From: Octopus sinensis
Lineage: Eukaryota
Length of the DNA stretch: 64,000 bases
Assembly (NCBI RefSeq): GCF_006345805.1
Contig: NC_043008.1
Coordinates: 50,716,001 to 50,780,000 of the forward strand
Reading direction: 5' to 3'
The translations under genes were made by a program, and so were the position numbers. The notes under the pieces were generated by a model. That model saw only the letters and a program-made list of their open reading frames with translations, made no database searches and was not told where the DNA came from. The first letter of the stretch is position 1. Every line of letters begins with the position of its first letter. Shown one piece after another: positions 37,622-64,000 of the stretch.

Positions 37622-37696
<75 letters not shown>

Positions 37697-39118
37697 ATAT
37701 ATGTCATGTTTCAAAATGGTAATGGTTTGATTTGGAAAATATCATAGAAGATTTACTTTGAATTATTTACCACAAAACTGGCCTTTGAGTACTCTGGGTC
37801 ATAAGGTCGAAGGTCATGAAGGTTACCCTTACTAGGCAGTGAATTGACAGAATCGTTAGAACGTTGTATAAAATGCCTTGTGGTATTTGTTTTGACTCTC
37901 AGTGTTCCCGCCGGGGTGAGCTTTTATTTTCATCATTTTGAGGTCGGAAAAGAAAAAAAGAAAAATACCAGTCTTGGTGGGGTGGAATGGCCGAACTGGT
38001 AAAGTCTGAGCAAGGGTAAGATGCCTGGTAGTATCCATTCGAGGTCTTTGGGTTATGATAATTCTCTCTATGATCAAAGACATTCTTCTATCTGTGAACA
38101 GCGTCCCTTAATTTCAGACAATGGATACCGTATTATCCAATGCAGTACCCATTTTTTTTAAAGGTGGCAGAGTATGAAACAATGTTGATGAGTGTGTAGT
38201 GGGGGTGATTCCACTGCTGTTTTTCGATGATCGAGCGACCATTCAAAGTAGTAGTCCCCAATCTCTTTTACATTACGAACCGGTTTCACTCAAGTTAATT
38301 TTTTCATACACCATGTGATCACAAGCAAAACAAAAACATGATAAAGTGCATAATATATTTTTTAAATTTCGTTTTTGGATTTGGTTTGCAAGATTCTTTA
38401 TATGAGTTCGTTTGTTGAAGTATATTCTGTTGTGTCTGGAGAGAGTCATTTTCTTTTTGTGCCTTATAATATAACACAATCACCGCGAAAATTTTAGGAA
38501 AATAAAACTAAATAAGTGGAAATTTTACAGGTAAGTGTGTTATATTATAAGGCACAAAAAGAAAATGACTCTCCCCAGACACAACAGAATATAATTTAAT
38601 TATTACGTATATAATACAAATGTATTTCATATGTAATGAATATACAATACAAAAACACTCTGCAGTCTGCGTTAGTCAGAAAAATAGATATAACATTTTA
38701 GGATGTATTCTTTCTCTGCGGTTTGACACTGGTTTGTAGTCCGGTAGTTGTGGAACCCAAATGTAAACGACTCCCTAATTATTGACATTGAATAATTTGT
38801 TGTATTGCAGACATGTAAAAAATTCAATCATTATTTGACTGAAAACCGCCACCTGCGCCAAAAAATCGATTCTTTGAAAGCCGAAAAGGAGAAGTTTGAT
38901 GTGATCCATCAAAAACTCGAGAAAGAGTACCACCACATTCGCCAGAATATTATTCATCTTGTAGAGAAATCAACACAAGCCTACAGTTACAGGTAAAGTT
39001 ACTCTGTTGGGCAGACGGCTTTGGTCTTTTACTTGTTTCACTCATTGGACTTCTCACGGACACAACGTGAGGATCGTGAGCCGAATGCTCTAACCACTAA
39101 GCTACACACACACGCACA

Positions 39119-39162
<44 letters not shown>

Positions 39163-39288
39163 CCACACACATACAGACACACATACACACACACACACGC
39201 ATACACACACACACACACACAAACACGCACATACACACACACACACAGACACACGCACACACACACAGACACACAGACAAACATACAG

Positions 39289-39321
<33 letters not shown>

Positions 39322-39452
39322 CACACAGACACACAGACAAACATACAGACACACACACACACACAAACACACACAAACACACACACAAACACACACACAC
39401 ACATACACACAGACACACGCACACACACACAGACACACAGACAAACATACAG

Positions 39453-39508
<56 letters not shown>

Positions 39509-41054
39509 ACGCACACACACACAGACACACAGACAAACATACAGACACACACACACACAAACACACACACAAACACACACACACACACACACAGACACAC
39601 GCACACACACACAGACACACAGACAAACATACAGACACACACACACATACACACACACACACAAACACACAACACACACACACACATGCGTATATGTATA
39701 TTATTTTATTCTGTTATTCTTTTAATTGTTTCAGTCATTTCGACTGCAGCCATGCTGGAGCACTACATTTAGTCGAACAAATCGCCCCCCCCCCAGGACT
39801 TATTCTTTGCATGCCAAGCTTAGTACTTATTCTATTGGACTCTTTTGCCGAACCGCTAATGTTACGGGGACGTAAATACACCAACATCGGTTGTCAAGTG
39901 ATGGTGGGGGACAAACACGGGGACACACACACACACACGCACACACACACATACGACGAGCTTCTTTCAGTTTCCGTCTACCAAATCCACTCACAAGGCT
40001 TTGGTCGGCCCCCGAGGCTATAGTAGAAGACACTTGCCCAAAGTGCTACGCAGTGGGATTGAACCCGGAACCATGTGGTTGGTAAGCAAGCTACTTATCA
40101 CACAGCCACTTCTGCACCTGTATATATACATACATACATACATACATACATACATACATACATACATACAAATATAAGTATATGTATATATATAAATATA
40201 TCTTACTGCTTGTCTAATTACTAATTTTGTTTCTGCAAAACATCAGGGAAGATGCGCAGAACCGAATGGTTGTTATTGGAGAAAAGTCTGAGAAAGACAT
40301 CGCACAGCACCATGCTGACATGAAGGAATTGGTACGCATCATTGACCATGATCGAAAGTTGCGAGATTTTATGAATCTGAAATCCAGAGAACGACAAGAA
40401 GATTCGGGAACTCTTGCATGGCGACAGAAAAGAGGTAAGAACTTATGCTTCATTCAACATCATCATCATCACCACCACCACCACCACCATCATCATCATT
40501 ATCTTCATCATCATCATCATCATCATCATCGTCATCGTCATCTTCATCGTTGTTGTTGTTGTTGTTGTTGTTGTTATTATTATTTTGGTTTGGTTCAGGT
40601 TCGGTCTTATTCCTGGCAGGATTTATGTGGGTAGCGGGTAACCTTAGGTATCCACAAGTTTTCAGCTGACTTTCAAGTGTTTAAAACCCTCCTGATAATC
40701 TTTGCTGCCCCTAAGGGACAAAATACATGCATACATATTGAGAAATCGACAGTTACTCTATCCAGATTACAACTTCAGGTTTATACCTGTAATTATTGGG
40801 ACCCCGGGATATGTATCACACTGCCTAAATACCAATCTTGAGAAATTAGGCTTCTCAAAACCAGAAAAGAGAAAGCTATTTTGAAGACTACAAATCCAAA
40901 CCGTCACTGGAACTGTAGAAAGCTGTAAAACTTTCCAGAAGTTTATCATTTAAATATACACGAGCATGTCTAGATATGCAACTATATGCATGAGAATGTA
41001 TACATAAAGCAAAACATACACATCTGCACAAATGCATACACACACACACACACA

Positions 41055-41085
<31 letters not shown>

Positions 41086-42228
41086 CACATCGGCTCAGCA
41101 AATAGAGACTCGGACATTGCTTAGAAAATATTTTTCATTTTTAACTTCGTATATAGTACGCACTAGGGATTTTGACATTTAAATTTTGGGAAACAAATGC
41201 GGATTATACTCGAGGATTTACGGTATATTTCACTACAAAGCTGGCTTGTTTGAGTTTTTTGCTCCATGATTTGCAGAAATGTTTGTGTTTTTTTTGCTTT
41301 TAATGAGCATTATTTGGTTGGCATCGTGTGATTGCAAGGGAAAGCGAACCCAAACAGTGTTCTAAAGGTTAGATTAAATTCTGTTTTATCGTAAAATTAA
41401 TTAAATGAAATTAGTTTGTCTTTCAGAATAGGTTTATGCTAGACAAACATGTAAAGAAATAGAATAAATTCATTTCCTGACAAGCGTGGTGATATTCAAC
41501 GATGTGGAGAGAGTGGACGAAAAAGAAGTTCGTTTTTCACCAAAGTACAAATATGCAACAACAACAACAACAACAACAACATCAACAATATTGATAACAA
41601 TAATAGTAGCAACAACAAGAAAAATAATTGTGTGTGTGTGTATGTGTGTGTGTTACTGTCTTCCTACCATGTCATCGCGTAACAGTAGTAAATGAATGTC
41701 ACCGTCATACAAGCAGAGACCTTCGTTTCCAATCTTCCGTGAAAACATGTCTGGTTATGGGGGAAATATTACTTTGCTTGGAAACAAGATGATGATGATG
41801 ATGCTGATGATGATGATGTTTCTAATTTAGGCACAAAACCAGCGACCTTTTTTGAGAAATGGGTTAAAATGGGTTTAATCGATTACTGCAGTTCCACAAA
41901 ACAAAAAAAAAAGGGTTAAAAAGTATTAAATGCTAAAAGAGTGTATCCATCCATCCACCCATCCATACATACATACATGCACATACATGCATACCTACAT
42001 ATACACATACGTACACACACACATATATAATGTAATATATTTATACACACACACACATACGCATATATAAAATAGCTATATGGCTGTCTATCTATGTACA
42101 ACTGATACGACAGGCTTCTGTACAGTTTCCATTTATTAAACCTCCCTCACAAAGCATTGGCTGAACCCAAAAGCGAGAGGTTGGGAAGCAAATTGAAATT
42201 TATTAACCACACGGCACCGATGTTTTAC

Positions 42229-42280
<52 letters not shown>

Positions 42281-43168
42281 TACATACACAAAGAAAGAGA
42301 GACAAGCAGAGAGACAGAAAGACAGAATGACAGAGACAGACAGACAGGCAGACAGAAGGAGAGAGTGAGAGAGATGAGGAAGGAGAGAGTGAGAGAGAGA
42401 GAGAGACAAGCAGAGAGACAGAAAGAGAGAATGACAGAGACAGACAGACAGGCAGACAGTAGGAGAGAGAGTGAGAGCGATCATTGATCAATTTAAGTCT
42501 TTCTCTTCTTCAAATTAATCTCTTGGTGCCTGCCTCCTTCGGTATTTCTACATTTTGTTGCCATGTTTGTATTATAGAGGTTTTGGAAGCTGAAAGGAAA
42601 AAGGAGAGCCAAGAAGACTCTGTGGAGAGATACGAAGCTGCTGTGGCAAGAATCAAAGCGATGACAGGCGAAGACAATTTGGATCTGGACGTACCAAAGT
42701 TCATTGAAGTGGAAGACAAAAACTTCGCCCTCTTCAATTATGTTAATGAGATGAACAGTGAAATCGAGTTGCTTAATGACCAGACGAAAGAGGTTTGTAC
42801 GCATGTTTGTTAAATGTCCATCCGTCCATCCATCCATCCATCCATCCGCCCGCCCGTCCGTCCGTCCGTCCATCTATCTATCCATCCATCCATCCATCCA
42901 TCCGTCCGTCCGTCCGTCCGTCCGTCCGTCCGTCCGTCCGTCCATCCATCCATCCGTCCATCCATCCATCCGTCCGTCCATCCATCCATCCGTCCATCCA
43001 TCCATCCATCCATCCATCCGTCCGTCCGTCCGTCCGTCCGTCCGTCCGTCCGTCCGTCCATCCATCCATCCGTCCATCCATCCATCCGTCCATCCATCCA
43101 TCCGTTCATCCATCCATCCATCCATCCATCCGTCCGTCCGTCCGCCCGTCCGTCCGTCCGTCCGTCCG

Positions 43169-43201
<33 letters not shown>

Positions 43202-45344
43202 CTTTGCCGCCAACTATTTCTGTGAGGGTCGTGGGGGAAGGGACCTCAGGCATCTTCACCATTGGGTCGAGCGCATATTGTCACCTCTCTTTTTCATAAT
43301 TTTTTTAATGAACAGGATTGACATGTGCAGCCGTTGTCGAAATGATATAACCATCAATCGATCGATCGATCCATCCGTCTGTCCGTCCATCGATCGATCG
43401 ATCCATCCATCCAGCTATCCATCCATCCGTTTATCTATTTATTTTCATCCTCTCAGGTGCAATAAAATACATCAATCGATGGCGGTAGATTGCCTGGGTT
43501 GTTAGAGGATCGGATAAAATGCCTTACAGTATATGTAACAATTCTTTGCGTTCTGCTGGCAATGCCTGTGACGTCACTGGTGCTAACCTTTATCGGTATT
43601 TAAGTAAATTATCTCTGTTGGGTAACATTGGTGGCAGAGAGGAGAGGACTTTTGCCGATACGAGCAACCGCTAGGCTTCCTAAAGAAAATACTGTTACCC
43701 AGGGCCTATGCATTTAACTGCACATAAATGATGAGCCTTGACTGACGGTGGCTCAAGAATAGAACTTTCAACGTGAAATTACGCCCTACGTATCATGGAA
43801 TGAGTTTAGAATTGATCAATTTCGTCATTTTTACAACTCACCAAGAGTTCATTACAATCTCAAAAAGAAGACAGCTGAAGAATCTAGTAGAAAGATAAAT
43901 ATTAAAATTCATTATGGCATAAAATGTTTAATTCATTGCTTCTTTCTGATTGTGACACCAGCCAGCAGTTTTGAGGGAAAAGTTGGCCCCGGTCTGATTT
44001 GAGCTCAGAACGTAAAGAATCGGCAGAAATGCTGCTAAGCACTTTCTGTGATGAGCTAACGATCCTGTCTTATGGTTTCAAATTTTGGCACAAGCAATTT
44101 TAGATGAAGTATGCTAGTCAATTACATCGGCTCCAGTACCCGACTGGCACTTTATTTTATCGACCCTGAAAGGATGAAAAGTAAAATTGACAGTGGCAGG
44201 ACTTGAGCTCAGAATGTAAAGAATAGAAAAAATGCCTCTAAGCATTTTTCTTGGATGCGCTAATGATTCTAAGAGCTTGCCGCCTTTGAGTAAAATTCTT
44301 AATGAAAACATACATTGTAGTTTGTTATCTAAAATAAGTAAGAAGATTTCTGATCAGCCTCTTTGTTTCATAACAGGATGGACCATGAATTGTAAAGCCT
44401 TGGAAGCACTCCGTCGGTTACGACGACGAGGGTTCCGGTTGATCCGATCAACGGAACAGCCTGCTCGTGAAATTAACGTGTAAGTGGCTGAGCACTCCAC
44501 AGACACGTGTACCCTTAACGTAGTTCTCGGGGATATTCAGCGTGACACAGAGAGTGACAAGGCCGGCCCCTTGAAATACAGGTACAACAGAAACAGGAAG
44601 TAAGAGTGAGAGAAAGTGGTGAAAGAGTACAGCAGGGATCACCACCATCCTCTGCCGGAGCCTTGTGGAGCTTTAGATGTTTTCGCTCAATAAACACTCA
44701 CAACGCCCGGTCTGGGAATCGAAACCGCGATCCTACGACCGCGAGTCCGCTGCCCTAACCACTGGGCCATTGCGCCTCCACTGAATTGTAAAGCTGTTAA
44801 CTACTGAATCAAGACATTTATTTCTGTATTAGTCACAATTTGAATGAAACAAAAATCATTGAATATTAAAAATTTCGTTTGAAAATTATGAGCAACCTTG
44901 TTTTAACAGATCCAAAAAGACATCGAGAATTTCCAGCATGAAGGTGCTCAGCTTGACTTCGAGCGGAAGAAGATTTTAAATGAACTGGAATCGCTGAGGC
45001 TGGAAGTGTCCAAAGATATATCAATCAAAGAAGAATCGGTCAAAGAAATTTCAAAGATATTCGATCAAATTAAAACTGGTAAGATTTTCTTTGAATGAGT
45101 CACTCTCATTCTTCTGCGAAATAATTATAAAAGAAATATCTATTCTTATGTTTTGAGTTCTAAATCGTTGGCAATTTTTTCCCTCCGTCTTTTTTTTTTC
45201 GCTTTGCCTTTCCTTTGTTTCCGGTTTCTAAAGAAGAGCGTTTGCTCGAAACGTTAAACCACCTTTCTTTCCTTCCCTGAGCGTCTGCTAATACTTTGCA
45301 TGTACCACGTCCTCGCGTTGTTTTTGTTCTTGCGTTTGTTCTTC

Positions 45345-45380
<36 letters not shown>

Positions 45381-46207
45381 CGGGAAGGTTTACGAAAATA
45401 AACAAAAGACGAAGGCAGGTGGAGTACAAACAAACAAATGTATTAGTTTGGCGCTCAGGAATATAAATAAAACAAGTCTTTTACGTTTCGAGCCTACGCT
45501 CTTCGACAGAAAGATACACAGAAAAGAAACAAGGAGAGAAACACGGAGAGAAAAAACATGCGTGCAGGAGCTAACGATTCAACATAGGATAATTCTTTAA
45601 CACTCAAATCCTAAATCTCTCCCTCCTTCTCTTTCTCTCTTCCACTCACACAGTCTCTCTAACTACACCCCTCTCTCTTATACTCTTGATCTCATGTCTC
45701 TCTGTTTCAGCCATCAAGTCCATCTTCACGGTTACCCAGTGTGACCCGGCTCCCATTGACGATCTTCTGGGTCTGTCAGCCGGCATCAATCAAACGAATA
45801 TGATACAGTACTTGGGAGTGATAGAACAGCGAGTCAACGAGTTGTTGCTTATTCAAATGTATCTCTCTAGCAAGGTATGTGTAGAACAACGCCAAACACA
45901 TCACGCTGGTTAGGAAGTAAAGTTCGTATCAGCTTTCAGTTGGTGGCCGTTTAAATACGGGACAGAGGCACACACACACACACACGAGCGCCAGCATACG
46001 CACACACAAAGCCACCATCGTCATACATCGTCATTTAGTGTTTCTTTTTATGCTGTCACGGGTTGAACAGTTTGACATGAACTGATGAGCCTAGAAAGCT
46101 CCAATGAGCGTAGCTGCTCTTCAGAACCCCTCCAACCACTTCACAGTGTTCAAATATAAATTAGAAGTAGCTCGAGGTCCTCCTCCTCCTCCTCCTCCTC
46201 CTCCACC

Positions 46208-46247
<40 letters not shown>

Positions 46248-46841
46248 CGTCATCATCCTCATCCTCATCCTCATCATGATCCTCCTCCTCATCCTCCTCA
46301 TCATCATCATCTTCGTCGTCCCCATTTCTTTACTGCCCACAAGGGCTAAACACATAGAGGGGACAAACAAGGACAGACAAACGAATTAAGTCGATTACAT
46401 CGACCCCAGTGCGCAACTGGTACTTAATTTATCGACCTCGAAAGGATGAAAGGCAAAGTCGATCTCGGCGGAATTTGAACTCAGAACGTAGCGGCAGACG
46501 AAATACCGCTAAGCATTTCGCCCGGCGCGCTAACCACTCTGCCAGCTCGCCGCCTTATAATTCCCACCACCACCACCACCATGTGAGTTCGATTTTGTTT
46601 ATAACTTCACAGAGTGCACCGGGTGCTTTTCGTGGCACCACCGCTGGTGTGAGGTCTCCGAGCACTCGTAAGACAAGATCCTTCAAGTGAGTGGGTTTTG
46701 TATAGAAGGATATATGAAAGTATGACAGGGAGGGACAAAAGCAGGCTCAAGTGTCTCGCTGAAAAAGTGAATACGTGGTTTCTTCATTTGGAAATAGAGA
46801 GAAGGAAATAAATTAATACATAAAGAGAGGGAGAGAGAGTG

Positions 46842-46905
<64 letters not shown>

Positions 46906-47326
46906 GATCAAGGTATAAGGTAAAGTGAATGTGAGAGAAGGTGAGAGGAACACAGAGAATTGGTGGAAACCAAGGGAAAACAATGGATGAGAAGCAATAC
47001 ACCTTCCTGTGAGAGACAGATATTAGGGGGTTTGTGGGAATCAGGGTTCATTCGATTCTCAGAAGTCTTGGACTAGCAACTATAGCCCTCTCCCTGAAAA
47101 TTTCAGGCATTGGGCCTATAGTAGAAACAAAAAAAAATTATTGTTATTATCATCGTTATTGAGAGAGTAGCACGTGCCATCAAAGTGACACAGGGGGTAC
47201 AAATATACCCATCGTCGTCGTCATCGTCATCGTCACCATCACCATCATCCTCATCGTCATCATCATCGTCATCATCATCGTCATCATCATCGTCATCATC
47301 ATCATCGTCATCGTCATCATCCTCAC

Positions 47327-47365
<39 letters not shown>

Positions 47366-50300
47366 CATCGTCATTGTCATTATTGTTATTAATTGCAGAA
47401 TCAGTTGACCAACGACCCCAAATTTAAAGAAAGCGAAGAATCAGACCCAAGGAATGCTTTAGGCAATATTTCATTCCTTCCTCCTTCAATCGGGCAAGTA
47501 GCAAACACTTTTTCTTTTAATAAAAAAACGGAAACTCTCCCTCTTCCCCTCTCTGTCTGTCTGTATGTCTGTCTGTCTGTCTCTGTCTGTCTCTCTCTCT
47601 CTCTATTAATTTAGCTTTTGTATTTGGTTTGCAAGATTCTTGATGTGAACTCAGGTGTTGAAACATATTTTGTTGTACCTCGAGAGGGTCATTAGGCCAA
47701 AAATAAACACACGCATTGGTTCTATTTCACATCTTTTATTATTATTAGCTAATTGCTTAACCATCTATTTAATTAACTTATGAAATGTTTAATTAATACT
47801 TCGATCAATCAATTAATCAACTTGGTTAGTCAAAGTCTTTTCGTTGCCATTCGTGACCTCACCAATGATACACCCTCCCCACATTAGGTCTGCTTCAGTG
47901 CTGTTTTACACCGGGAGTAGAGATCGCATGTCATTGATGTTAGATTAGGGATTTCTGGAAATTTTTCATGAGCCCCGGCGCAATAGTCCTTCCGAATAGA
48001 CCGACCAGCTGGTTTTCATCGACGCCTAGAATTTTCCCGAGAACATCGTCGCTTTTGAATTTGGTTTGCAAGATTCTTTATATTCTGTTGTGTCTGGGGA
48101 GAGTAATTTTCTTTTTGTGCCTTATAATGTAACACACTCACCGGTAAAATTTCCGCTTATTTCTTATTTTTTATTTATATTTTCCTAAAATTTTCGTTGC
48201 GTCCTGCAACCTTTTCAATAGTCTTTTCAAGACTATCGAAAAGGTTACAAAACGCAACGAAAATTTTAGGACAATAAAAATAAGAAAAAATGGAAATTTT
48301 ACCGGTGAGTGTGTTACATTATAAGGCACAAAAAGAAAATGACTCTCCCCAGACACAACAGAATCGTAGCTTTTATTCGCCACTAATCGTCTATAGAATG
48401 CAATTAGGGACCTTTCAGCAAACGCATTGCCTAATTTATAGAGGACTGTGAGCGTTTGATATTTCAGAAACCAAGCGTCTTGTTTCGGTCTTTGCTTGAC
48501 CCATTACTGCATCCTTATGAAAGAGACGAGCAGTGAGAGAACGAGAGTGATAAACGGTGACCACCCCCCACTAAACCACCGTTAAGCAATCGTTGGAGAT
48601 GTCACTTAGATAACTTAGATATGTTTCGACCAAAGATTGGTCCAGGCCATGTCTAACTTAATAGCACCACCTGATAGGATTATTCGAATCCTGTTTAAGT
48701 CAAGTTTTGTTTAAGTCAAGTTTTGTTCAAGTAGTGAGTTCTTGTTGGGTGAGTTGTATCCAATTATGGGTGGCTTATCTGGTATTCTTTTAAGGAATCT
48801 ATCCAGGCTCCGTTTAAAGTTGATGGGATCCTTTTCTTCTTTGATCTCTTTCGGGACAATGTTAAATAGGGTAGGGCCTGTTGAGGAAAAGAAATTATGT
48901 TGCAGTGTACATGTATGTTGTGATCTTGAATTGGGCAGGGGACGTATGGCCCGTGATCCCAGTCTTGGATGAACCTTGAAGCTAATGTTAAGGTCGTTTG
49001 GGCAAAGTTGGCGGTATATTCTCCACATCGTACAAATGATGTACCGCTCACGGCGACGCTGGAGGGAGTAAAGTTTCAAGGCTTTAAGGCGATTCCAATA
49101 ATCGAGAGCAGCCATGCATAGAGATGTTTTTAACATCGCCGCTATTTATTGATTTCAAATTTTGTCACAAGACCAGCCATTTCGTGTAAGCCGATTACAT
49201 CGACTTCAGTGTTCAACTGGTACTTATTTTATCGACCCCCTAAAGAATAAAAGGCGAAGTCGACCTCGGCGGAAATTTGAACTCAGAACGTAAAGACGGA
49301 CGAAATACCCATTTCTTTACTACCCACAAGGGACTAAACACAGAGAGGACAAACAAGGACAGACAAACGGATTAAGTCGATTACATCGACCCCAGTGCGT
49401 AACTGGTACTTAATTTATCGACCCCGAAAGGATGAAAGGCAAAGTCGACCTCGTCGGAATTTGAACACAGAACGTAGCGGCAGACGAAAATACCAGTAAG
49501 CATCTCGCCCGGCGTGCTAACGTTTCTGCCAGCTCGCCGCTATTTACTGCAGCGGTGGTGATGCTGCTGCTGCTGATGATGGTTATTATCCATAATTTCC
49601 TTTTTGTTGCCTTTGTTGTTGCTGCTGATTCTTATTTCTTTATTGTCCACAAGAGGCTAAACACAGAAGGGACAAACAAGGACAGACAAAGGGATTAAGT
49701 CGATTACATTGGCCCCAGTACGTAACTGGTACTTAATTTATCGACCCCGAAATGATGAAAGGCAAAGTCGACCTCGGCGTAATTTGAACTCAGAACGTAA
49801 CGGCAGACGAAATACGGTTACGCATTTCGCCCGGCGTGCTAACGTCTCTGCCAGCTCGCCGCCTTTGTGTGGCAAAATTCTTCCCACACAGACATACCTG
49901 CGCCACAATAAAAGCAAAGAGAGGCAGCTGTGGGAAATACTTTTTGTAGGCGTTGATCCGACGGCCATTCGTAACCACCATTTGTGACACCATGTTTCTT
50001 TTGAAGAATTGTTAAGTTGAAAAAGAAAATAAACAAATTCCGCCTCGAAAGGTGCTGGTGGTGGAGGGGACAAAAAAAACAACAACAAAAAACAAAAGAC
50101 AACAATAGGCGCAGGAGTGGCTGTGTGGTAAGTAGCTTGCTAACCAACCACATGGTTCCGGGTTCAGTCCCACTGCGTGACATCTTGGGCAAGTGTCTTC
50201 TGCTATAGCCCCAGGCCGACCAATGCCTTGTGAGTGGATTTGGTAGACGGAAACTGAAAGAAGCCTGTCGTATATATGTATATATATATGTGTGTGTCTG

Positions 50301-51316
50301 TGTGTGTATATGTTTGTGTGTCTGTGTTTGTCCCCCTAGCATTGCTTGACAACCGATGCTGGTGTGTTTACGTCCCCGTCACTTAGCGGTTCGGCAAAAG
50401 AGACCGATAGAATAAGCACTGGGCTTACAAAGAATAAGTCCCGGGGTCGATTTACTCGACTAAAGGCGGTGCTCCAGCATGGCCGCAGTCAAAATGTATG
50501 AAACAAGTAAAAGAGTAAAAGAGTAAAGAGAATACAAAACCGAAAACTGACCGATTCTTCAGGATCCTCGTCAGTTTAGCAACAAATAATTCCAAAGACA
50601 TTTTACAATAGAACTTTTGTTTTAAAACACAGTTAACAAAACTTATGGGCGATGTTAAGGGGTGTCTTGCCAATGCAACGACAACAACAACAATAACAAT
50701 AACAGCAACAACAACAAGAACAACAATAATGCGTGTAGATAACAAGTTAAAGGTTATGTTTAGCTGGGAGTGTATAAATATTTGTACAAGAGGGAAAAAA
50801 ATTATATACAATAGTCTTAAAGGAACAGTATTCGAAATAAACATATCAGAAATAACTGATTCAAGATGGCTTTATTGTTGGGAAACTCGGATGGAATAAT
50901 ATTGTACCATTACGTACGAAATGTTATAATTATGGTATTTTGATAACACCGGCAGCAACTGCAGCAGTAAAAACAACAACAACAAAAACACAGCGATGGC
51001 GACGACGATGATAACAATAACAAATCCCCCCCAAAAAACATATATATGAAACAAAGCAAAATAAATGTCGGCCCTAATTGAAATATATTAATGGCGGATT
51101 TGTGCAGTTAAATATTTTATAGAAATAATATTTGTATTTCTTAATTTGACTTATAACAATGGAGTCGTTTCTGAGACTTAATTCTTTGTTTATTCGTTCT
51201 GTCGGATAATTTTGATTGGTTTTTGGTTGGGGAAGAAAAAAAGTTAATTCTTTGTTATTCCTCCTCCTCCCCTTTTCTTTCTTCCTTCCTTCCTTCTCCT
51301 TCCTTTCTTCCTTCCT

Positions 51317-51377
<61 letters not shown>

Positions 51378-51527
51378 TTTCTTCTTTCTTTCTTTCCTTC
51401 CTTCCTTCCTTCCTTCCTTCTTTCCTTCTTTCTTTCCTTCCTTCTTTTTTCTTTGTTTCTTTCTTTCCTTCCTTCTTTCTTTCTTTCCTTCTTTCTTTTT
51501 TTTTCTTTCTTTCTTTCCTTCTTTCCT

Positions 51528-51574
<47 letters not shown>

Positions 51575-51650
51575 ACCTTCCTTCCTTCTTTCTTTCTTTC
51601 TTTCTTTCTTCCTTTCTACCTTCCTTCCTTCCTTCCTTCCTCCCTCCCTC

Positions 51651-51685
<35 letters not shown>

Positions 51686-51794
51686 TCCTTCTTTCTTCTC
51701 CCTTCTTCCTTCCTTCCTTCCTTCCTTCCTTCCTTTCTACCTTCCTTCCTTCCTTCCTTCCTTTCTACCTTCCTTCCTCCCTTCCTTCCTCTCT

Positions 51795-51828
<34 letters not shown>

Positions 51829-52075
51829 TCTATATCGTGTCGTTGCTCTTCTGTTTCATTCCAGAGAGGAATACCTGGGCGCTGATGAAAATAACGACGG
51901 AGAAGATGAGTTAAAACCTCTGACGCGAAGCGATTTGGAACTCCAGGTCCTGAAATCCGTGAAACGACGAGAAGAGAGCAGCCAGGGCGAAGACCCGAAA
52001 TTTGAAATGATGGTGAATCGAGAAAAAAGCTTAAAATCGAACCAAAAGAAAGAATTTAAGAAAGAGAGAATTTAA
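33758..52075 (+). CDS. CCDC63: CCDC63/ODAD1 (CCDC114, ODA-DC2) family outer dynein arm docking complex subunit, 564 aa. join(33758-33915,35740-35870,36743-36924,38811-38992,40247-40434,42578-42792,44910-45078,45711-45874,47399-47493,51865-52075)
   Basis: 10 phase-consistent exons total 1695 nt from ATG to TAA. Coiled-coil protein with family motifs [55 protein letters not shown] and [12 protein letters not shown]63 versus ODAD1 orthology cannot be resolved by eye. Confidence 0.9.
34133..34367 (-). mobile_element. Young full-length SINE (family B, central domain resembling the Meta/Sauria-type domain) with 13-bp TSD
   Basis: AGATCAGACTAAT at 34120-34132 and 34368-34380. Other copies at about 24611-24840, 36181-36372, 46322-46556, 62455-62645 (-) and 52998-53205 (+). 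Confidence 0.9.
34388..34455 (+). ncRNA. Type I hammerhead ribozyme, canonical core, extended stem I
   Basis: CCACCG CUGAAGA GAUC-caauaa-GAUC GAA AUC-acgc-GAU C/ UGGUGG: all core bases are present and three stems pair. A distal helix GCAA(34391-94)/UUGC(34450-53) closes an asymmetric internal loop. Folded by eye. Confidence 0.8.
35740..35870 (+). CDS. CCDC63: CCDC63-like coding exon 2, [12 protein letters not shown]...NLSKTK
   Basis: aag acceptor, gtaaag donor; phases 2 and 1 fit the neighbouring exons. Confidence 0.8.
36743..36924 (+). CDS. CCDC63: CCDC63-like coding exon 3, ...[11 protein letters not shown]
   Basis: tacag acceptor, gtaagt donor. Confidence 0.92.
37340..37567. repeat. Foldback hairpin (about 100-bp arms) between (TA)n tracts
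   Basis: GGACAGAAAAAAGAAGGCTTTCCT / AGGAAAGCCTTCCTTTTTTCTGTC core plus outer pairing. Confidence 0.85.
38421..38593. repeat. Foldback element, copy 1
   Basis: TATATTCTGTTGTGTCTGG...ATAACACA inverted at both ends. Confidence 0.85.
38811..38992 (+). CDS. CCDC63: CCDC63-like coding exon 4, [20 protein letters not shown]...STQAYSY
   Basis: tgcag acceptor, gtaaag donor. Confidence 0.92.
39105..39685. repeat. (CA)n-based compound microsatellite with higher-order units
   Basis: Directly visible. Confidence 0.95.
39710..40119 (-). mobile_element. Full-length family A SINE
   Basis: Reverse-complement homology to 50108-50530. Confidence 0.85.
40247..40434 (+). CDS. CCDC63: CCDC63-like coding exon 5, EDAQNRM...[12 protein letters not shown]...
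   Basis: atcag acceptor, gtaaga donor. Confidence 0.93.
40640..40952 (+). mobile_element. 3' fragment of an RLE-type non-LTR retrotransposon (NeSL/R2-group-like)
   Basis: [22 protein letters not shown]...LEKLGF...GTVESCKTF, with an internal stop. Confidence 0.6.
42578..42792 (+). CDS. CCDC63: CCDC63-like coding exon 6, ...[23 protein letters not shown]...
   Basis: atag acceptor, gtttgt donor; hallmark family motif. Confidence 0.94.
42815..43200. repeat. (CCAT)n/(CCGT)n microsatellite
   Basis: Directly visible; starts about 20 nt after the donor at 42793. Confidence 0.95.
44405..44785 (-). mobile_element. tRNA-derived SINE family E
   Basis: tRNA-like head (GGCGCAATGGCCCAGTGGTTAG...GGTTTCGATTCCC) and shared tail; relatives at about 25388-25696, 25721-26058 (+) and 32375-32700, 3400-3665 (-). 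Confidence 0.75.
44910..45078 (+). CDS. CCDC63: CCDC63-like coding exon 7, IQKDIENFQ...FDQIKT
   Basis: aacag acceptor, gtaaga donor. Confidence 0.9.
45190..45555. mobile_element. Inverted pair of Penelope-like pseudo-LTR fragments, each with an HHR-like motif (45223-45260 +, 45477-45514 -), around a (TA)n
   Basis: GGTTT CTAAAGA A GAGC-GTTT-GCTC GAA ACGT T AAACC and TCTTT CTGTCGA A GAGC-GTAG-GCTC GAA ACGT A AAAGA; same family at about 57470-57630 and 60612-60760. Confidence 0.65.
45711..45874 (+). CDS. CCDC63: CCDC63-like coding exon 8, AIKSIF...[16 protein letters not shown]...
   Basis: ttcag acceptor, gtatgt donor. Confidence 0.93.
47399..47493 (+). CDS. CCDC63: CCDC63-like coding exon 9, NQLTNDPKF...ISFLPPSI(G), with GC donor
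   Basis: tgcag acceptor; GG|GCAAGT non-canonical donor gives phase 2, matching the next exon. Confidence 0.75.
48081..48364. repeat. Foldback element, copy 2: near-perfect 284-bp palindrome with a 3-nt loop
   Basis: Arms pair inward to ATAGTCTT-ttc-AAGACTAT; same termini as 38421-38593. Confidence 0.9.
48560..49140 (-). mobile_element. 5'-truncated LINE (CR1/L2/Daphne group), RT C-terminus and 3' UTR
   Basis: [20 protein letters not shown]...[14 protein letters not shown]...[16 protein letters not shown] is typical of the post-RT domain of this group. Confidence 0.8.
49160..49864 (-). mobile_element. Three tandem family B SINE copies at the truncated 5' end of the LINE
   Basis: Repeated GGGGTCGATGTAATCGAC / GCCTTTCATCCTTTCGGGGTCGATAAA blocks at about 49160-49310, 49311-49540 and 49628-49864. 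Confidence 0.85.
50108..50530 (+). mobile_element. Full-length tRNA-derived SINE (family A; CORE-like TTGGGCAAGTG domain, internal (TA)(TG) tract, (GAGTAAAA)n tail)
   Basis: A/B-box-like head; many copies in the window, e.g. about 760-1120, 6620-7335, 34949-35345 (+) and 53800-54130, 54360-54750 (-). Confidence 0.85.
51270..51830. repeat. (TTTC)n/(TTCC)n homopyrimidine tract of about 560 bp
   Basis: Directly visible. Confidence 0.96.
51865..52075 (+). CDS. CCDC63: CCDC63-like terminal exon, [24 protein letters not shown]...KKERI*
   Basis: ccag acceptor after a very long pyrimidine tract; acidic stretch followed by PLT motif; TAA at 52073-52075. Confidence 0.85.
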
Positions 52076-53727
52076 AACCAAGATCAAAGAATTCTAACCC
52101 CACCCCCACTAAAAAAATCTCCAACTGCAAAAAAACAAACAAACAAACCAACCCCCAAACCCCAACAACTCAAAGATGCTCCCCTTTCCAATTTAAGTTT
52201 GAAATTTGAAAATCTAGAAATAGATTTCTACTACTGGGACCTGGAATTTTGGGGAAGGGACCGCCAGTGCCCTGTTGGTATTTCTTTTATTGGTACTGAA
52301 AGGATAAAAAAAATAAACTTGACCTCGACGGAATTTGAACTCAGAACGTTAAGCTGGACGAAATATTTACGAAGCATTTTTCCCGGCGTGCTAACGACTC
52401 TGCCACCAGATCGCCCCCTTAAAAAATAGCTTATCCCTAAATTAAATAACTTCCGGTGTTTTGGTTTCAGATTATTATTATTATTATTATTATTATCATA
52501 TTATTATTATTATTATTATTATCATTATTATTATTATTATTATTATTATTCACTTTGAATTTCTATATTCTTTATCAGTTTTTATAAGAATTTATTTTCA
52601 AATTTTCAGTTTGTAGTTTAATTCAGTTTTGATTTCGATTCCAGTTTTGATAGATATTTATAAAAAAAAATAATGAAAATCCCTTTTTAGTATTGTTGCA
52701 GGCATGGTTGTATGGTTAAGAAGCTCGTTTTGCAATCACCTGTTTTCGGGTTCATCCCCCGCCCCGTACGGCACCTTCAGCAAGTGTTTTTTTACTATAA
52801 CCCTGAACCAACCAGTGCCTGTCTTGTGAGTAAATTTGGTAAACATAAACTCTGTGGATGTCCCCCGTATATATTTTAACTAACCTAAAGTTTGCTTAGG
52901 CCCAAAACACTGCTTGGCGCTGATATTACTATAAATTTGGGTTAGATGAGCGCTGAAGAAGGGACAACAAGCCCCGAAATATGGTATATACACTGAAAGG
53001 CGGCGAGCTGGCAGAAACGTTAGCACGCCGGGCGAAATTCTTAGCGGTATGTCGTCTGTCTTTACGTTCTGAGTTCAAATTCCACCGAGGTCGACTTTGC
53101 CTTTCATCCTTTCGGAGTCGATAAATTAAGTACCAGTTGCGTACTGGTGTTGATCTAATCGTCTTTCCCCTCCCCCAAAACTTCGGGCCTTGTGCCTAGA
53201 GTAGAAAAGGATATTCCACATCTTTGTAATGTAGTTTGTTCTTCCGCTGCAAAATGATTTTGGTATTCTCTATGCATGTCTCCATTCAACACCCACCAGT
53301 CTTCTGAATTTATAAATTAAGACAGTGTTGAACATCGCTATTACAGAGATATTCAGAAGTTCACATTCAGACACGATGAGGTGAATGACGTAAAACAAAA
53401 TGAGAGCTAGAGCTGGTTCGTTGCTCTCATTGGTTGGTGTGGGCCAAGTGGTCAGCTTTATTATCCGTTTTTCGTACTGGTAGAAATGAAATCGAAAGAA
53501 GCTGATTTATAGGGATGAATTCAATGTTTACAAATTCTTGAGGAGGCCCTTATATACTGGAGCGTTCTTTGTACGCTATCTTCGTACCTGAATAGCAAAA
53601 CAGATGTGCAATTTGTTTACTGGAGAAAATTTTCATTCCAATCCAAGATCCACAGTCATATATATTCAATATTACGAGAGCGATTTATATATGCTTATCT
53701 CTCACAGATAATAATACCTTATCAACA

Positions 53728-55337: not shown

Positions 55338-56750
55338 CTCTATCACAGGTTTTGTTGGAGCTCCTGGAGTCTTGCATGCGTAGCGGGTTTACTACCTGCA
55401 GCCCACAGTACCATGCTATTCGTTCTTTTCAGCTGTCTAATACTTTCCTGATTATTCCGGCCGTCCAAAGTTGGCAATCCTTTTGTAACAGTTCTACTGG
55501 GCACAATATTCCGATTTCTTTTATATTCCTCTTGATGCCTTCTGATACTGTCCCCAAAGACCCAACAATAATTGGCCCTATCTTCATCTTCTTCATTTTC
55601 CCTCGTACTTAAGAGGATTGTATCTATCTTTTCGCCTTCCTTCTTGTCTAATTGTGGATCAAAGGGACATACAACATCAACTACATAGCATATGTGGTGC
55701 ACCTTGTCCACCACCTCTAGCATGTGATCTGTTTCAATTGGGAAATCCCAGAGGATTTTGCTAATCTCCGTATTATTATTATCCCTTTGTAACACAGTGT
55801 AGGTAAAAATGCATCGGAGTCCTTTAGTCATCTGACAAGTCACAACAAGGACCTCACACAGATAATACTTTCCTTAATAACATTGCATCGGATTTGCAGT
55901 TGCCCTAAAAAGTCTTGAGGTTTCGATGGGATTGAGTCCAACGCTCCGATCACCACTGGTATCACTTTTACATTACCCTCTCGCATTCCATACAGTGTTG
56001 CCATTTCCACTTCCAATTCGGAGTACTTGGTGATTTTTTTCAACCTCTTTACTCACAACATTCATGTCATTTGGTATGGCTACATCAATGATCTGACAGT
56101 ATTGATCTCACTTATTCAATATGACAATATCCGGCCAACGGTGTTCGATTACACGATCCGTCTGAAAATCATAGTCTCATCCCGCAGTGACTGGTATTTC
56201 CCACTCTTTTCTGTTTCCTTACATTTCACCCTCGCATCGTCCAGTATTGCAACATCTATTATCTTTGCTTCTTTTTTATCTTTATGGATGATCACAATAT
56301 CTGGCCGTCTCGCCTCTATGACTTGGTCGCATTGTATTTTGTAATGTTTGTTTTCCATTACTCTCTCTGGCTTGTGTTCATACCATTGTTTGGCTCTCTC
56401 GAGGTTTGCTTTACCGCACAACAGCCAGTGGACATATCTGGCCACATTGTCGTGTCTCCTTTTGTAATTCAGTTGTCTTATTTTTATCACCTGCTTTCAC
56501 TGCACTGCCGAATGCAGCTCCTGTGTGCCTTGGGCATGCGCTGTAGTTTGTTTTGGTGCTGTTTTCTCTATATTGAAAGTACTTTACGTAGGATGTGCGC
56601 GGTGCCTAGAAGTGCTATTTTCTGTATGTTATGTATATTCGTAAGCCCTGGTGTTTTCGTTATGTATTTGTCTGAATGTTTTTTTAATCATGCCTCATAC
56701 ACTTATTATTATAGGGATTGTTTCTAATTTTAGGCTCCTGTTGTTGTTGT
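55290..56750 (-). mobile_element. Stack of four 3' fragments of R4/Dong-like RLE non-LTR retrotransposons
   Basis: Motifs YKRRHDNVARYVHW, RRPDIVI...IIDVA, KILWDFPIETD, KVIPVVIGAL and QKIALLGTAHILRKVLSI*, with frameshifts and stops; (CAA)n tails. Confidence 0.85.
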
Positions 56751-57669
56751 TGTTATTGAATGAAGTACGTGTAGTTACCTCTCTGTGAAGATTCTGTGAT
56801 TTTTATCATGCGGAAAGGGAAGTAAGAATATAGTTCTCTTTGTATAATTTTCGACAGGAACGAGTTGCATGTCTAGCCTATGCCACGAGGGAGACATAAG
56901 GTGTGTTATTACTGGACATAATTTTATTTTTCAGTTTCCACTTACACATCAAGATCATTTGTTGGTACGGAAACACCTCCTTTTAAAAAAAATTTACGTG
57001 AATACTTACAAAAACACTACAAAAACAAACAGACAAAATGACTGAGAACAAATTTAATTTCACAATAAAACTCACGATTTGTACACGAAAAATTAATATA
57101 TCAACATTTAAATACAATATTTGGAACAATTTGAATGATACTGTTAACAACAACAAAAAATCAAAAACAATGCATTTTGCCAAGTGGTGAAATCAAGCCC
57201 ATTTAATGAAAAGTGAATGTGTGGTTTTGAGCAATACATACAGTACTTCAGCAATTCTTTCGTCAGTGTTGCTAGTCAAAGAGAAGAATTGGAAATGTGT
57301 GATCTAATAGAAAAAAGACATGTTCACCACCAAAACGACTCCCTACCCGAAGTCTTTATCCAAGAGCGAGCAAGGTAGAAGGTCTCATATATCCCTGCAT
57401 TTCTGAAAGTACAGGAGCTTCTCTTATATCCTCAAAGCAACAACTAAAAGTAATCTTTTAGCCACGACACATCCTTTATTTTCTCTCCATGTTTCTTTCT
57501 GTGTCCCTTTCTGTGGAAGAGCGTAGGCTTGAAACGTTAAAGACTTTTTCACTTCCCGAGCGTTAAACTAATACATCTGTTTGTCGTCTACACCACCTGT
57601 CTTCGTCTTTTGTTTTTTTGTGAATTCCCCGCTAAATATATACTTATATACACATAAATATATATACTC

Positions 57670-61567: not shown

Positions 61568-62741
61568 TATATATATATATATACATATATATATATACGT
61601 ACATATATATATATATATATTATGTATATATATATGTATATATACGATGTATAATATATATATACATATATGTATATATGTATACATACATATATGTATA
61701 TACACACACACACACCACACACACACCATAATATATATATATAATATACTCAGTTACATATGCAGAATCTTATGAAATCTTATGCAGTAACATATACAAG
61801 CATGTTATTAGTGGGATACACACACACACACGCACACACACGAGAACGCTTATATACAAATGGACTCACGCAAACACACAACTCCCTTTATTCGTATACA
61901 CCCACACTTACACATTAGTACTCACATTTATGTCCACACATATTTTACTACACATAGCCACAATTTGTTACATACATATATAGCTATATACAAGAACATG
62001 GACACATACACATGATTACACATACTCATGGTACAGGTGGTCCCTTTTGTGCAGGTATAAAAACAAGTTTGGTCCAAATATATACAAGTTACAGAGTCCT
62101 TATACTACAATATTGGCTTTGTTAGATTTGCGATAGAACAGGGGTGCGTGAGAAGTGGAGTCATTCATGCCTCTTCAGAAGATATTAGCTGTTTGTTTTA
62201 ATGGAGTGAATCAGTAACAACGGAGAATGAAAGCTGAGTTGCGAACTAACTCGCCTGGAGTTTGTCTCAAGATACTCTGCTGCTTGCCTCGAGTTACTAC
62301 CTTGTTGTTGTTACTCCTTTTGTGTTCATCTAGTGTACTCCTGGTTTTGTTCATTATAAACACGACTGTGTTGGTCGGCTAGAGATGTTAAACCAAAAGT
62401 AAAAACAAAAAATATATAAAAAATAGTATCGACAAAAAAAATAATTGTTTTAAAATTTGGTACAAGGCCAGTAGTTTTCTTTAGGAGCAGGGGTTAATCA
62501 ATGATATCGACCCCAGTACTTGACTGGTACTTTATTTTATCAACCCCGAAAGGATGAAAGGCAAAGTTGACCTCGGCGATATTTGAGCTCAAACCGTAAA
62601 ATGCCGGGAGAAATGCTGGTAACGATTCTGCCAGCTCGCCGCCTTAAAGAATAATAAAAATAAAAATAAAAAATAATATAAAAAAATAAAATAAAGATTG
62701 GGTAGAGATTGAAACCAAAACCGTAACTTTGTAAATGCTTC

Positions 62742-63986
62742 TCAAAAAACTTTCTCAAATGATAACTGTAAGTTTTTAGAATTTTTCGTACTGTTACTAG
62801 TCGTAGGAGAGGTAGTGGTAGCAGAAGCAGCGTCGGTGGTAGTCGTTGATGTTGCGGCTGTAGTTAGACTTGCTGTATTTGTACTTACAATATCAGATGC
62901 TGTGGTTGTTACGGTACTGTTAGTATCACTGGTATCAGCATCAATAGTTTTGTTAGCAGTAGCCGTAGTTGATGGAGCACTAGCAGTTATTATTGTTGAG
63001 CTTGTAGTATTAGCATTAGTAGTATTAGTAGTATTAATTGCAGTAGCAGATTTGTTTCCGGTCGTGTCAGTAGTGGTAGCATTATCAGTAGTATTCGAAG
63101 AATTACTTTTGGTAATTGTCTCGGTGCTATTTATGGTACTTTTATTCTTGCTAGAACCATCCAAGAAAACGGCAGTTGTTACCCCACTCTGGAACACTTC
63201 AGTCTTCTCGCTATTTCCAGCACTTTTAGAAACGTTCTTATTAATATCATCGATAGATTTTTTCTGGTTTTTTCTTGCTTTTGTGCCATTGTTTAGAAGG
63301 TTTTCATCTGGTAATCTATTTGTTTCTTCGGTCAAGTTTTGTGACGTGGAATTCGAAACCATCGCAATATTCTTTCCTTTCTTTTGTTTCACATTTTTAT
63401 TCGGTTTCGATATTTTTGTTTTAATTCTGGCTTCATTCTTTTTCTTCCCCGGGAAAGATTCTGTCTCTTCTTCCGTTTCATTCAACCCTGCTAGTTCATC
63501 CATATCTAAATCTAACGTTTGATTCATCCATTCAATGTTTTCTGCTGAAGAGTTCGTCAAAGTATAGTTCGAGTTCGTTTCGTTCGACACATATTGCAAC
63601 TTATTTGCTGCGGACTTGTTTCGCCTTCGTTCACCTTCGGCTTTTTTCGTCGCTGATGGTATTTTCTTCCTCCTTGTCGTTTGTTTTACTTTTTCTGCCG
63701 TAGAATTGGTTGGTTCGCGTCGTTCGGCGGCAGAAGTTGACTTTCTGTTCCCAGAGAGACTTGGTACACAAGTTCGGTGGTCCAGAGTTGGTGTGGTCCC
63801 ATTGGGACAAGGTATGCACTCTCTTTCACTGGGCATGTAATGGTCTGGAGGACAGGGCACGCAAACAAAACAACAGTCTTCTTCACTGTGTGACACCTGT
63901 ACGTGATTAGGTTCGCAAGGTAAACTACAAAACGAAGCTGGAAAAATAGGCTCGATATCGCGAAATTTTATTGCTCTGAGTGTTTC
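62742..63986 (-). CDS. Exon encoding a class C GPCR (mGluR/CaSR-like) nine-cysteine domain (NCD3G) fused to a basic, then Thr/Asn-rich mucin-like tail; upstream exons are outside the window
   Basis: Acceptor ttttttgcag| at 63987. PASFCSLPC...DCCFVCVPC...Y....ECIPCPNGTTP....TC has exactly 9 Cys in NCD3G spacing. The frame stays open for about 415 aa in AT-rich DNA, with about 24 N-x-S/T sequons. Confidence 0.8.
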   Translation of the reverse strand, partial: ETLRAIKFRDIEPIFPASFCSLPCEPNHVQVSHSEEDCCFVCVPCPPDHYMPSERECIPCPNGTTPTLDHRTCVPSLSGNRKSTSAAERREPTNSTAEKVKQTTRRKKIPSATKKAEGERRRNKSAANKLQYVSNETNSNYTLTNSSAENIEWMNQTLDLDMDELAGLNETEEETESFPGKKKNEARIKTKISKPNKNVKQKKGKNIAMVSNSTSQNLTEETNRLPDENLLNNGTKARKNQKKSIDDINKNVSKSAGNSEKTEVFQSGVTTAVFLDGSSKNKSTINSTETITKSNSSNTTDNATTTDTTGNKSATAINTTNTTNANTTSSTIITASAPSTTATANKTIDADTSDTNSTVTTTASDIVSTNTASLTTAATSTTTTDAASATTTSPTTSNSTKNSKNLQLSFEKVF

Positions 63987-64000
63987 CTGCAAAAAATACC

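Follow-up and report, generated by a model that had tools for sequence, protein, structure and literature searches.

A candidate secreted, mGluR-derived gene lacking the seven-transmembrane domain in a 64-kb window of Octopus sinensis

The terminal exon and the gene family

The 64-kb window analyzed here (64,000 nucleotides of Octopus sinensis contig NC_043008.1, positions 50,716,001 to 50,780,000) carries at its right-hand end a minus-strand exon that encodes part of a Venus flytrap (VFT) and cysteine-rich domain (CRD) protein of the kind seen in G-protein-coupled receptors (GPCRs) of class C; all coordinates below are those of the window. The element at 62742-63986 (-) is a single exon whose first base is 63986 and which runs through 414 open codons, against a longest open frame of 166 in 2000 mononucleotide shuffles, to a TGA stop (62742-62744, -) at the same position in O. 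bimaculoides and O. vulgaris. Upstream of it lies the 3' end of the preceding intron (63987-64000, -; ggtattttttgcag/GAAACA), with a polypyrimidine tract and CAG acceptor at 63987-63996, and the boundary at 63986 is common to the gene models of O. bimaculoides, O. vulgaris and Argonauta. In its gene, which is specific to coleoid cephalopods, this exon comes last, as coding exon nine. Taking identity and architecture together, it very probably closes a secreted-type gene derived from a metabotropic glutamate receptor (mGluR) and lacking the seven-transmembrane (7TM) domain.

The first 73 codons (63768-63986, -) encode the VFT-CRD linker and the nine-cysteine domain, as delimited by Pfam and the cysteine count. 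The NCD3G family (PF07562) matches at 63789-63941 with E=1.1e-10 and 41.6 bits (cut-off 38.9). The exon contains exactly nine cysteines, at exon residues 20-73 with the ninth codon at 63768-63770, and all nine are invariant in an alignment with true mGluRs. Past the ninth cysteine the frame continues as a tail of 341 residues with zero cysteines. Near its start lies a conserved post-CRD motif, RKSTSAAERREPTNSTAEKVKQ (63681-63746, -), recovered in octopod and decapod alignments and holding one invariant N-x-S/T sequon (NST) and a dibasic RR. Its family consensus is RKS(T/A)SAAERR(E/A)PTNSTAE, most residues being invariant across octopods and decapods, and invariant columns make up 60% of exon residues 74-103 versus 5% of the remaining tail.

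The rest of the tail falls into two parts. A charged (K/R/E), Asn-rich and sequon-rich part, predicted to be disordered, spans 63108-63680 (-) (exon residues 103-293), with a ratio of nonsynonymous to synonymous substitution rates (dN/dS) of 0.36 against O. bimaculoides; a Thr/Ser/Asn-rich, 'mucin-like' end spans 62745-63107 (-) (residues 294-414; dN/dS 0.55 in the same comparison) and closes with KNLQLSFEKVF. In composition the tail is K/N/S/E-rich to about residue 260 and then reaches 31% Thr and 16% Ser. The exon contains 24 sequons, and the 23 that lie in the tail compare with 12.8 +/- 2.8 in composition-preserving shuffles (P ~0.001). The highest 19-residue Kyte-Doolittle mean in the exon is 0.56, where a transmembrane (TM) helix is expected to reach about 1.6. 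These measurements bear out the first-pass annotation of the DNA, which had read from the letters a good acceptor, a nine-Cys NCD3G domain, some 340 further residues in frame to a stop, a Lys/Arg-rich and then Thr/Asn/Ser-rich composition, about 24 sequons and the absence of a hydrophobic segment.

Its term 'mucin-like' stands for the Thr/Ser richness and for nothing further: Tandem Repeats Finder (TRF) reported no real tandem Pro/Thr/Ser repeats in the tail, proline is scarce (8 of 341 residues), Pfam found none of the mucin domains VWD, CysD or CK in the exon or the family proteins, and the segment is missing from decapod orthologs. The RefSeq name 'mucin-5AC' given to the O. bimaculoides product therefore reflects composition only. 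The Thr-rich end is shared, down to a similar LQL..KV at the C-terminus, by O. bimaculoides, O. vulgaris and Argonauta and is absent in Sepia, a distribution that marks it in these alignments as an octopod-specific addition. A triplet-microsatellite expansion as its source was considered and rejected, TRF finding one 30-nt imperfect triplet run and all four Thr codons being in use. An antisense open reading frame (ORF) of 235 codons at 62815-63522 (+) overlies this part as a by-product of its ACT/ACC/AAT-rich sense codons and is not a gene. Directly after the stop codon, a SINE-like element at 62500-62640 (-) supplies the first AATAAA (62531-62536, -; pattern scan), a candidate poly(A) signal 206 nt past the stop.

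The VFT exons lie beyond the window end at 64000, and the VFT is known from products of the same gene. The family was collected in two rounds: an exhaustive HMMER search using the flytrap/CRD part, then a search that started from the best hit, a decapod protein. Low-complexity candidates had swamped a word-indexed protein search for the whole ORF; it returned only an O. bimaculoides fragment and missed the O. vulgaris proteins, and another search with a VFT/CRD fragment returned only a beetle mGluR. The closest member is O. vulgaris CAI9731372.1 (931 aa), identical to the window exon at 409 of 414 residues, with 98.1% DNA identity at the locus. Argonauta hians GAB1606013.1, at 990 aa, is the longest member of the cluster, all of whose members are 7TM-less. 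The gene has nine coding exons in both Argonauta and O. vulgaris, with the CRD and the entire tail on the last.

In O. bimaculoides the gene is split into two RefSeq models, XP_014786696.1 ('mGluR3', 319 aa) and XP_014786699.1 ('mucin-5AC', 577 aa). The window ORF is 80% identical to the latter over its full length and ends at the same stop. XP_014786699.1 is N-terminally truncated, its annotated Met being internal and the exon staying open in frame upstream to the acceptor (CM046612.1 locus extract, 9941-10000). The O. sinensis record XP_036363665.1 (362 aa) is an N-terminal fragment of the same gene. One 7TM-less gene has thus received the database names 'mGluR6-like', 'mGluR3-like' and 'mucin-5AC', and the present result corrects these misleading automatic names together with the fragmentary O. 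bimaculoides and O. sinensis models.

Transcripts were found in cuttlefish. The Sepia pharaonis transcriptome (PMC5541922) contains a contig of 864 aa; the S. esculenta transcript encodes 865 aa from the first ATG and is present in at least 92 RNA-seq assemblies of larval cuttlefish. A third cDNA contig (run SRR24189505), presumably from a decapod, encodes 851 aa and is 71% identical to Sepia. All three decapod contigs are complete, with an in-frame stop before the first ATG, 851-865 codons, a stop, and a 3' untranslated region containing AATAAA.

The exon also contains an internal alternative 5' splice site (63105-63107, -; AAAA/GTAATT, cut at 63107/63106), which is used by the annotated 835-aa O. 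vulgaris isoform CAI9731371.1. That protein matches the window to exon residue 293 and then diverges, skipping the Thr-rich end, which for this reason appears not to be essential to the function of the family. Its alternative downstream exon (…SFKLFQILYLNVDILIFRVQI) is found at 57076-57140 (-), identical at 21 of 22 residues by tblastn, with an aacag acceptor and a GTGAGT donor, in a repeat-rich block about 6 kb downstream that is 91% identical to O. bimaculoides. The short isoform is likewise without a 7TM domain. A role of its alternative C-terminus as a membrane anchor is unlikely, the 19-residue Kyte-Doolittle mean of 1.40 falling below the TM range and the segment containing N, D, Q and R.

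Predicted architecture, fold and ligand cleft

Full-length members share one architecture: a hydrophobic N-terminus with a basic n-region, a polybasic stretch, the ANF_receptor flytrap, NCD3G, and a hydrophilic tail of 260-400 aa. Among the protein library hits (P labels), ANF_receptor (PF01094) matches P0003 with E=6.7e-46 and is also found in P0154 (the 835-aa isoform), P0155, P0153 and the O. vulgaris protein P0170. The signal-peptide-like N-terminus, preceded in the cDNAs by an in-frame stop, is the sole hydrophobic segment in the family proteins (19-residue mean 1.8-2.3; MRYPKWRNTFLLLVISLAIMASLVNG), the maximum elsewhere being 1.3-1.4. The C-termini (…EKVF, …ELANF, …ENNL) are hydrophilic, with no hydrophobic end of the TM or glycosylphosphatidylinositol (GPI) type. 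Secretion is expected from the combination of signal peptide and missing membrane anchor. Right after the predicted signal-peptide cleavage site runs the polybasic stretch (e.g. P0170 residues 27-36), GRRRKNRNRKR in octopods and GRRKKSKNKRR in Sepia; it holds R-x-K/R-R motifs and could be a proprotein-convertase site or a glycosaminoglycan-binding patch.

The AlphaFold2 model of the short O. vulgaris isoform has a pLDDT of 80-90 over the flytrap and CRD and below 35 over the whole tail. The top Foldseek matches of the folded part are the mGlu5 and mGlu2/3 ectodomains, with TM-scores of 0.84-0.86 relative to ectodomain-only targets. Sequence matches in the PDB are led by mGlu3 (E=1e-76), with other mGluRs at 1e-63 to 1e-71 and CaSR at 1e-10, the last for a C-terminal VFT/CRD fragment only. 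The cysteine aligned with the mGluR inter-protomer disulfide is kept, in a low-confidence loop as in mGluRs, and the VFT-CRD structural cysteines are retained, including the one that links the two domains. Sequon enrichment is significant in four of the five full-length ortholog tails (the window, O. bimaculoides and both Sepia-type sequences), and its recurrence argues that the tail is exposed to the secretory pathway. In a separate observation, the giant proteins P0006, P0011, P0012 and P0028 (2200-3900 aa) each give 5-12 separate matches to the flytrap/CRD query and look like tandem flytrap arrays.

The flytrap pocket was compared with that of human mGluR3 (HMMER alignment, PDB 7wi6). In mGluR3 numbering, the conserved contacts for glutamate and other alpha-amino acids are R68, S151, T174, Y222, D301 and K389, as reportedly described from the mGluR1 and mGluR3 structures (Kunishima 2000, Muto 2007). 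The conserved mGluR glutamate contacts are largely missing: S151 and Y222 are kept, and five of seven canonical contact positions are replaced (R68 to E, T174 to R, the Asp of VPxD to Y, D301 to I/L, K389 to A). The same changes occur in all family members. In the homologous cleft-lining segment, residues 167-215 of P0170, invariance between octopods and decapods is complete (100%), while the flytrap as a whole reaches 56% and most of the tail only 5%. A non-glutamate ligand is likely on this evidence, because the canonical contacts are replaced yet the cleft region is the most conserved part of the protein; a glutamate scavenger is unlikely with a pocket that lacks those contacts.

Absence of a 7TM domain, coding constraint and neighboring genes

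Class C GPCRs are defined by a flytrap sensor coupled to a 7TM domain. Members of this family carry both the class C VFT (PF01094) and NCD3G, and in none of them does 7tm_3 (PF00003) follow directly after the CRD; the protein is therefore not a GPCR by definition. Pfam returned ANF_receptor and NCD3G without 7tm_3 for P0003, P0001, P0154, P0155 and P0153, and in the same run true mGluRs matched 7tm_3 at E ~1e-73. The premise that the first TM helix soon follows the CRD in class C receptors is sound, TM1 lying about 12 residues past the ninth cysteine in aligned true mGluRs, where the cephalopod protein has instead the hydrophilic motif and the long disordered tail.

The DNA gives the same picture. 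A tblastn search of both strands of the 64-kb window, using three 7TM probes of mGluR origin and four class C receptors in full length, gave no 7TM-like match; the best hit had E 0.35 and fell in low-complexity DNA. This extends the earlier reading that no minus-strand 7TM frame lies in the 10 kb downstream. With the same probes, the only matches in the other loci (O. bimaculoides, 36 kb; Argonauta, 54 kb; O. vulgaris, 94 kb with all eight introns and 10-kb flanks) were to the flytrap and CRD exons. No 7TM exon being present at any of these four loci, the protein has a gene to itself and is not a splice form of a full receptor. In the exhaustive HMMER search, likewise, no protein with a 7TM domain exceeded about 38% identity to the query. 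A vestigial 7TM in the tail, raised by a MAFFT alignment of AERRE..PTN with mGluR ICL1/TM2 (ASGRE..PTD), was rejected at an hhalign profile-profile probability of 0.02.

Comparison between species points to selection on the frame. Relative to O. bimaculoides the exon has two indels, both in frame; of the nine indels in 1 kb of 3' flank, eight break the frame. Under the rates of the flank, the probability of no frameshift is ~1e-4 and that of no new stop ~0.04. The NG86 dN/dS for this pair is 0.44 in the tail (bootstrap 0.28-0.71) and 0.50 in the short CRD part. Against O. vulgaris the exon shows ten substitutions (five synonymous, five nonsynonymous) and no indel, versus 12 indels in the 1.9-kb flank. 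When cuttlefish species are compared, the flytrap has a dN/dS of 0.06-0.09, the CRD 0-0.09 and the tail 0.33-0.41. As judged from these substitution and indel patterns, the reading frame is under purifying selection, and constraint on the tail is seen in three independent species pairs.

Facing the flytrap/CRD gene is an outer dynein arm docking gene of the ODAD1/CCDC63-CCDC114 type at 36739-52093 (+), with ODAD1_CC matches of E 1e-18 to 1e-26; this agrees with the convergent CCDC63-like gene noted in the first-pass annotation. Eight of its exons are conserved with Argonauta, the last at 51857-52093. It is convergent with the flytrap/CRD gene in both Octopus and Argonauta and lies 1.8-2.2 kb past the annotated gene in the Argonauta and O. 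vulgaris records, and because both genera share this arrangement the synteny is regarded as conserved. Elsewhere in the window, exons of a UBE4/Ufd2-type E4 ubiquitin ligase occur at 13964-20245 (+) (Ufd2P_core, E=1.8e-48), interrupted by long CLSV/SL-rich intronic low-complexity repeats that give rise to spurious ORFs of 400-535 aa. ORFs resembling LINEs or other retroelements occur in the intergenic region at 55343-56490 (-) and in an ODAD1 intron at 48711-49136 (-), and neither has a Pfam match.

Interpretation, rival explanations and known systems

The gene most likely encodes a secreted receptor-like binding protein, composed of an mGluR ectodomain and a glycan-rich tail without the membrane half. 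It very probably descends from a metabotropic-glutamate-type class C GPCR and has no 7TM domain. The Octopus protein of about 930 aa has a predicted cleavable signal peptide, a short polybasic stretch, a complete VFT, the nine-cysteine domain and a tail predicted to be disordered, whose Thr-rich end in octopods is probably O-glycosylated. The secreted product, probably a disulfide-linked dimer, would bind its ligand extracellularly, either in solution or retained in matrix or mucus. Its working part would be the cleft of the flytrap, re-tuned to a ligand other than L-glutamate, with the tail as a spacer or retention module that is hydrated and glycosylated. A specific role as a non-glutamate ligand binder is put forward tentatively. 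More tentative still is the full proposal of a coleoid 'class C binding protein': a secreted, mGluR-derived flytrap/CRD dimer with a non-glutamate cleft, kept since the octopod-decapod split. A transmitter, a nutrient or a chemosensory cue may be what it buffers, presents or scavenges, in mucus or in extracellular fluid.

The soluble, heavily glycosylated VFT/CRD protein derived from a class C GPCR that the first-pass annotation proposed gains support from the architecture of the orthologs, whose upstream exons supply a signal peptide and ANF_receptor VFT ahead of NCD3G and the tail, and from the cuttlefish mRNAs, the 7TM-less loci and the tail constraint; no splicing to 7TM exons was seen at the four loci. 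The functions it suggested for the protein, namely ligand scavenger, decoy or mucus chemosensory protein, are candidates. Several observations weigh on the other side. At the nucleotide level the exon is no closer to O. bimaculoides (91-93% identity) than the 3' flank is (91%), and the tail dN/dS of 0.3-0.55, from a method (NG86) that ignores the transition bias in the ORF (73 transitions to 32 transversions), means weak constraint on individual residues, the pattern expected of a disordered, glycosylated region. Sequons in the Argonauta tail number 16 against 13 expected, which is not significant. The transcripts come from cuttlefish, and the RefSeq model of O. sinensis itself covers the N-terminal 362 aa only. 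The replaced contacts could mean that small-molecule binding has been lost, the ligand role being drawn from cleft conservation. Secretion, glycosylation and dimerization are predictions from sequence, and ligand binding and the physiological role are likewise inferred.

Among the rival explanations, the protein could be a dimer partner of full-length mGluRs, pairing through the lobe-1 interface and the inter-subunit cysteine in the endoplasmic reticulum or at the cell surface and acting as a dominant-negative or accessory subunit rather than as a free ligand binder. Retention of the inter-protomer and VFT-CRD structural cysteines would suit such a partner, and the lost glutamate contacts fit one that does not sense; truncated mGlu3 isoforms are reported to interact with canonical mGlu3 and lower ligand binding (PMC5714154). 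This reading is nevertheless unlikely: the nearest relatives with a 7TM in the library are non-cephalopod proteins and only ~30-38% identical, the most invariant region is the cleft-lining segment and not an obvious dimer interface, and a pure partner subunit needs no long glycosylated tail. That tail is the functional part in another scheme, in which the protein is a structural glycoprotein of extracellular matrix or mucus and the flytrap/CRD a ligand-free folded head or oligomerization module. The name 'mucin-5AC' on the O. bimaculoides fragment, the T/S/N-rich, sequon-enriched and disordered tail, and the lost amino-acid contacts can all be cited for it. Selection, however, bears hardest on the VFT and CRD (dN/dS 0.06-0.09) and least on the tail (0.3-0.5), decapods lack the T-rich segment and one O. 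vulgaris isoform skips it, and neither tandem Pro/Thr/Ser repeats nor VWD, CysD or CK domains are present, so that a structural glycoprotein is quite improbable.

Two further readings would deny the 7TM-less protein a role of its own. The 7TM-less product could be a minor or artefactual isoform, for instance from read-through of a lost or weak donor, with the main product a normal GPCR spliced to distant 7TM exons. The window ends 14 nt upstream of the exon, leaving the upstream part out of view, a weak GT follows the ninth Cys codon (TGT/GTACCA), and the internal donor is used in one annotated isoform. Yet 7TM-like sequence is missing from the 62.7 kb downstream in the window and from the O. 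vulgaris, Argonauta and O. bimaculoides loci, and the convergent gene closes the locus. No 7TM-bearing protein exceeds ~38% identity, no cluster member exceeds 990 aa, and the tail and stop position are conserved; together these make the isoform reading highly improbable. A decaying mGluR pseudogene that has lost its 7TM domain and stays open by chance and low-complexity composition is more improbable again. The antisense ORF of 235 aa over the T-rich part does reveal a compositional bias against stops, exon and flank match O. bimaculoides DNA about equally well, and the gene is modeled only in fragments in O. bimaculoides and O. sinensis. Against decay, Octopus and Argonauta share frame, stop and exon structure, and Sepia the architecture, the many flank indels have no frameshifting counterpart in the exon, VFT dN/dS is 0.06-0.09, and the gene is expressed in at least 92 cuttlefish RNA-seq assemblies.

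A secreted binding protein, the favored reading, can be set beside several known systems. With the mGluRs (vertebrate mGlu1-8 and the insect DmGluRA type) it shares a homologous VFT and nine-Cys CRD, a superposable predicted fold, and the structural and inter-subunit cysteines; it differs in having neither the 7TM domain nor the intracellular C-terminal tail, hence no G-protein coupling. NPR-C is a member of the ANF_receptor family that has lost its signaling domain and mainly binds and clears ligand. The cephalopod protein belongs to the same Pfam ligand-binding superfamily with the same kind of loss, whereas NPR-C retains one TM helix with a short cytoplasmic tail, lacks NCD3G and has a known ligand. 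Soluble class C forms are not known other than as minor splice variants. The open-access literature yielded no description, for cephalopods, of a class C gene that is dedicated, conserved and 7TM-less, nor of a soluble class C or mGluR-like protein. The stand-alone 7TM-less gene stands apart through strong selection on the flytrap in octopods and decapods, an invariant non-canonical cleft and at least 92 larval cuttlefish assemblies. It would represent a new use of the class C sensor module, possibly as an extracellular protein with a binding or modulating part in the nervous or chemosensory system of cephalopods, and, if the reading is true, would offer a naturally soluble class C ectodomain for biochemistry, structure and ligand discovery.

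Among GPCRs more widely, soluble splice variants (mGlu6, CRF2alpha, RXFP1/LGR7-truncate, Lgr4-ED) are secreted, anchorless ectodomains proposed to mop up ligand or act as antagonists (PMC3477067, PMC4154783). They resemble the cephalopod protein in being an ectodomain without a membrane anchor, secretion being predicted for the latter; they are minor isoforms of full-receptor genes, whereas the cephalopod gene, conserved across octopods and decapods, is dedicated to the 7TM-less form, makes no other, and adds a conserved tail of its own. Conceptually the nearest analogy is the molluscan acetylcholine-binding protein (AChBP), a stand-alone secreted protein homologous to the ligand-binding domain in a neurotransmitter receptor, encoded by its own gene (PMC3423370). 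AChBP has an unrelated fold (the Cys-loop receptor ectodomain), is a pentamer, and its ligand binding has been shown experimentally, whereas the cephalopod protein is known from sequence. If the favored reading is true, the cephalopod gene would be the metabotropic-receptor counterpart of molluscan AChBP.

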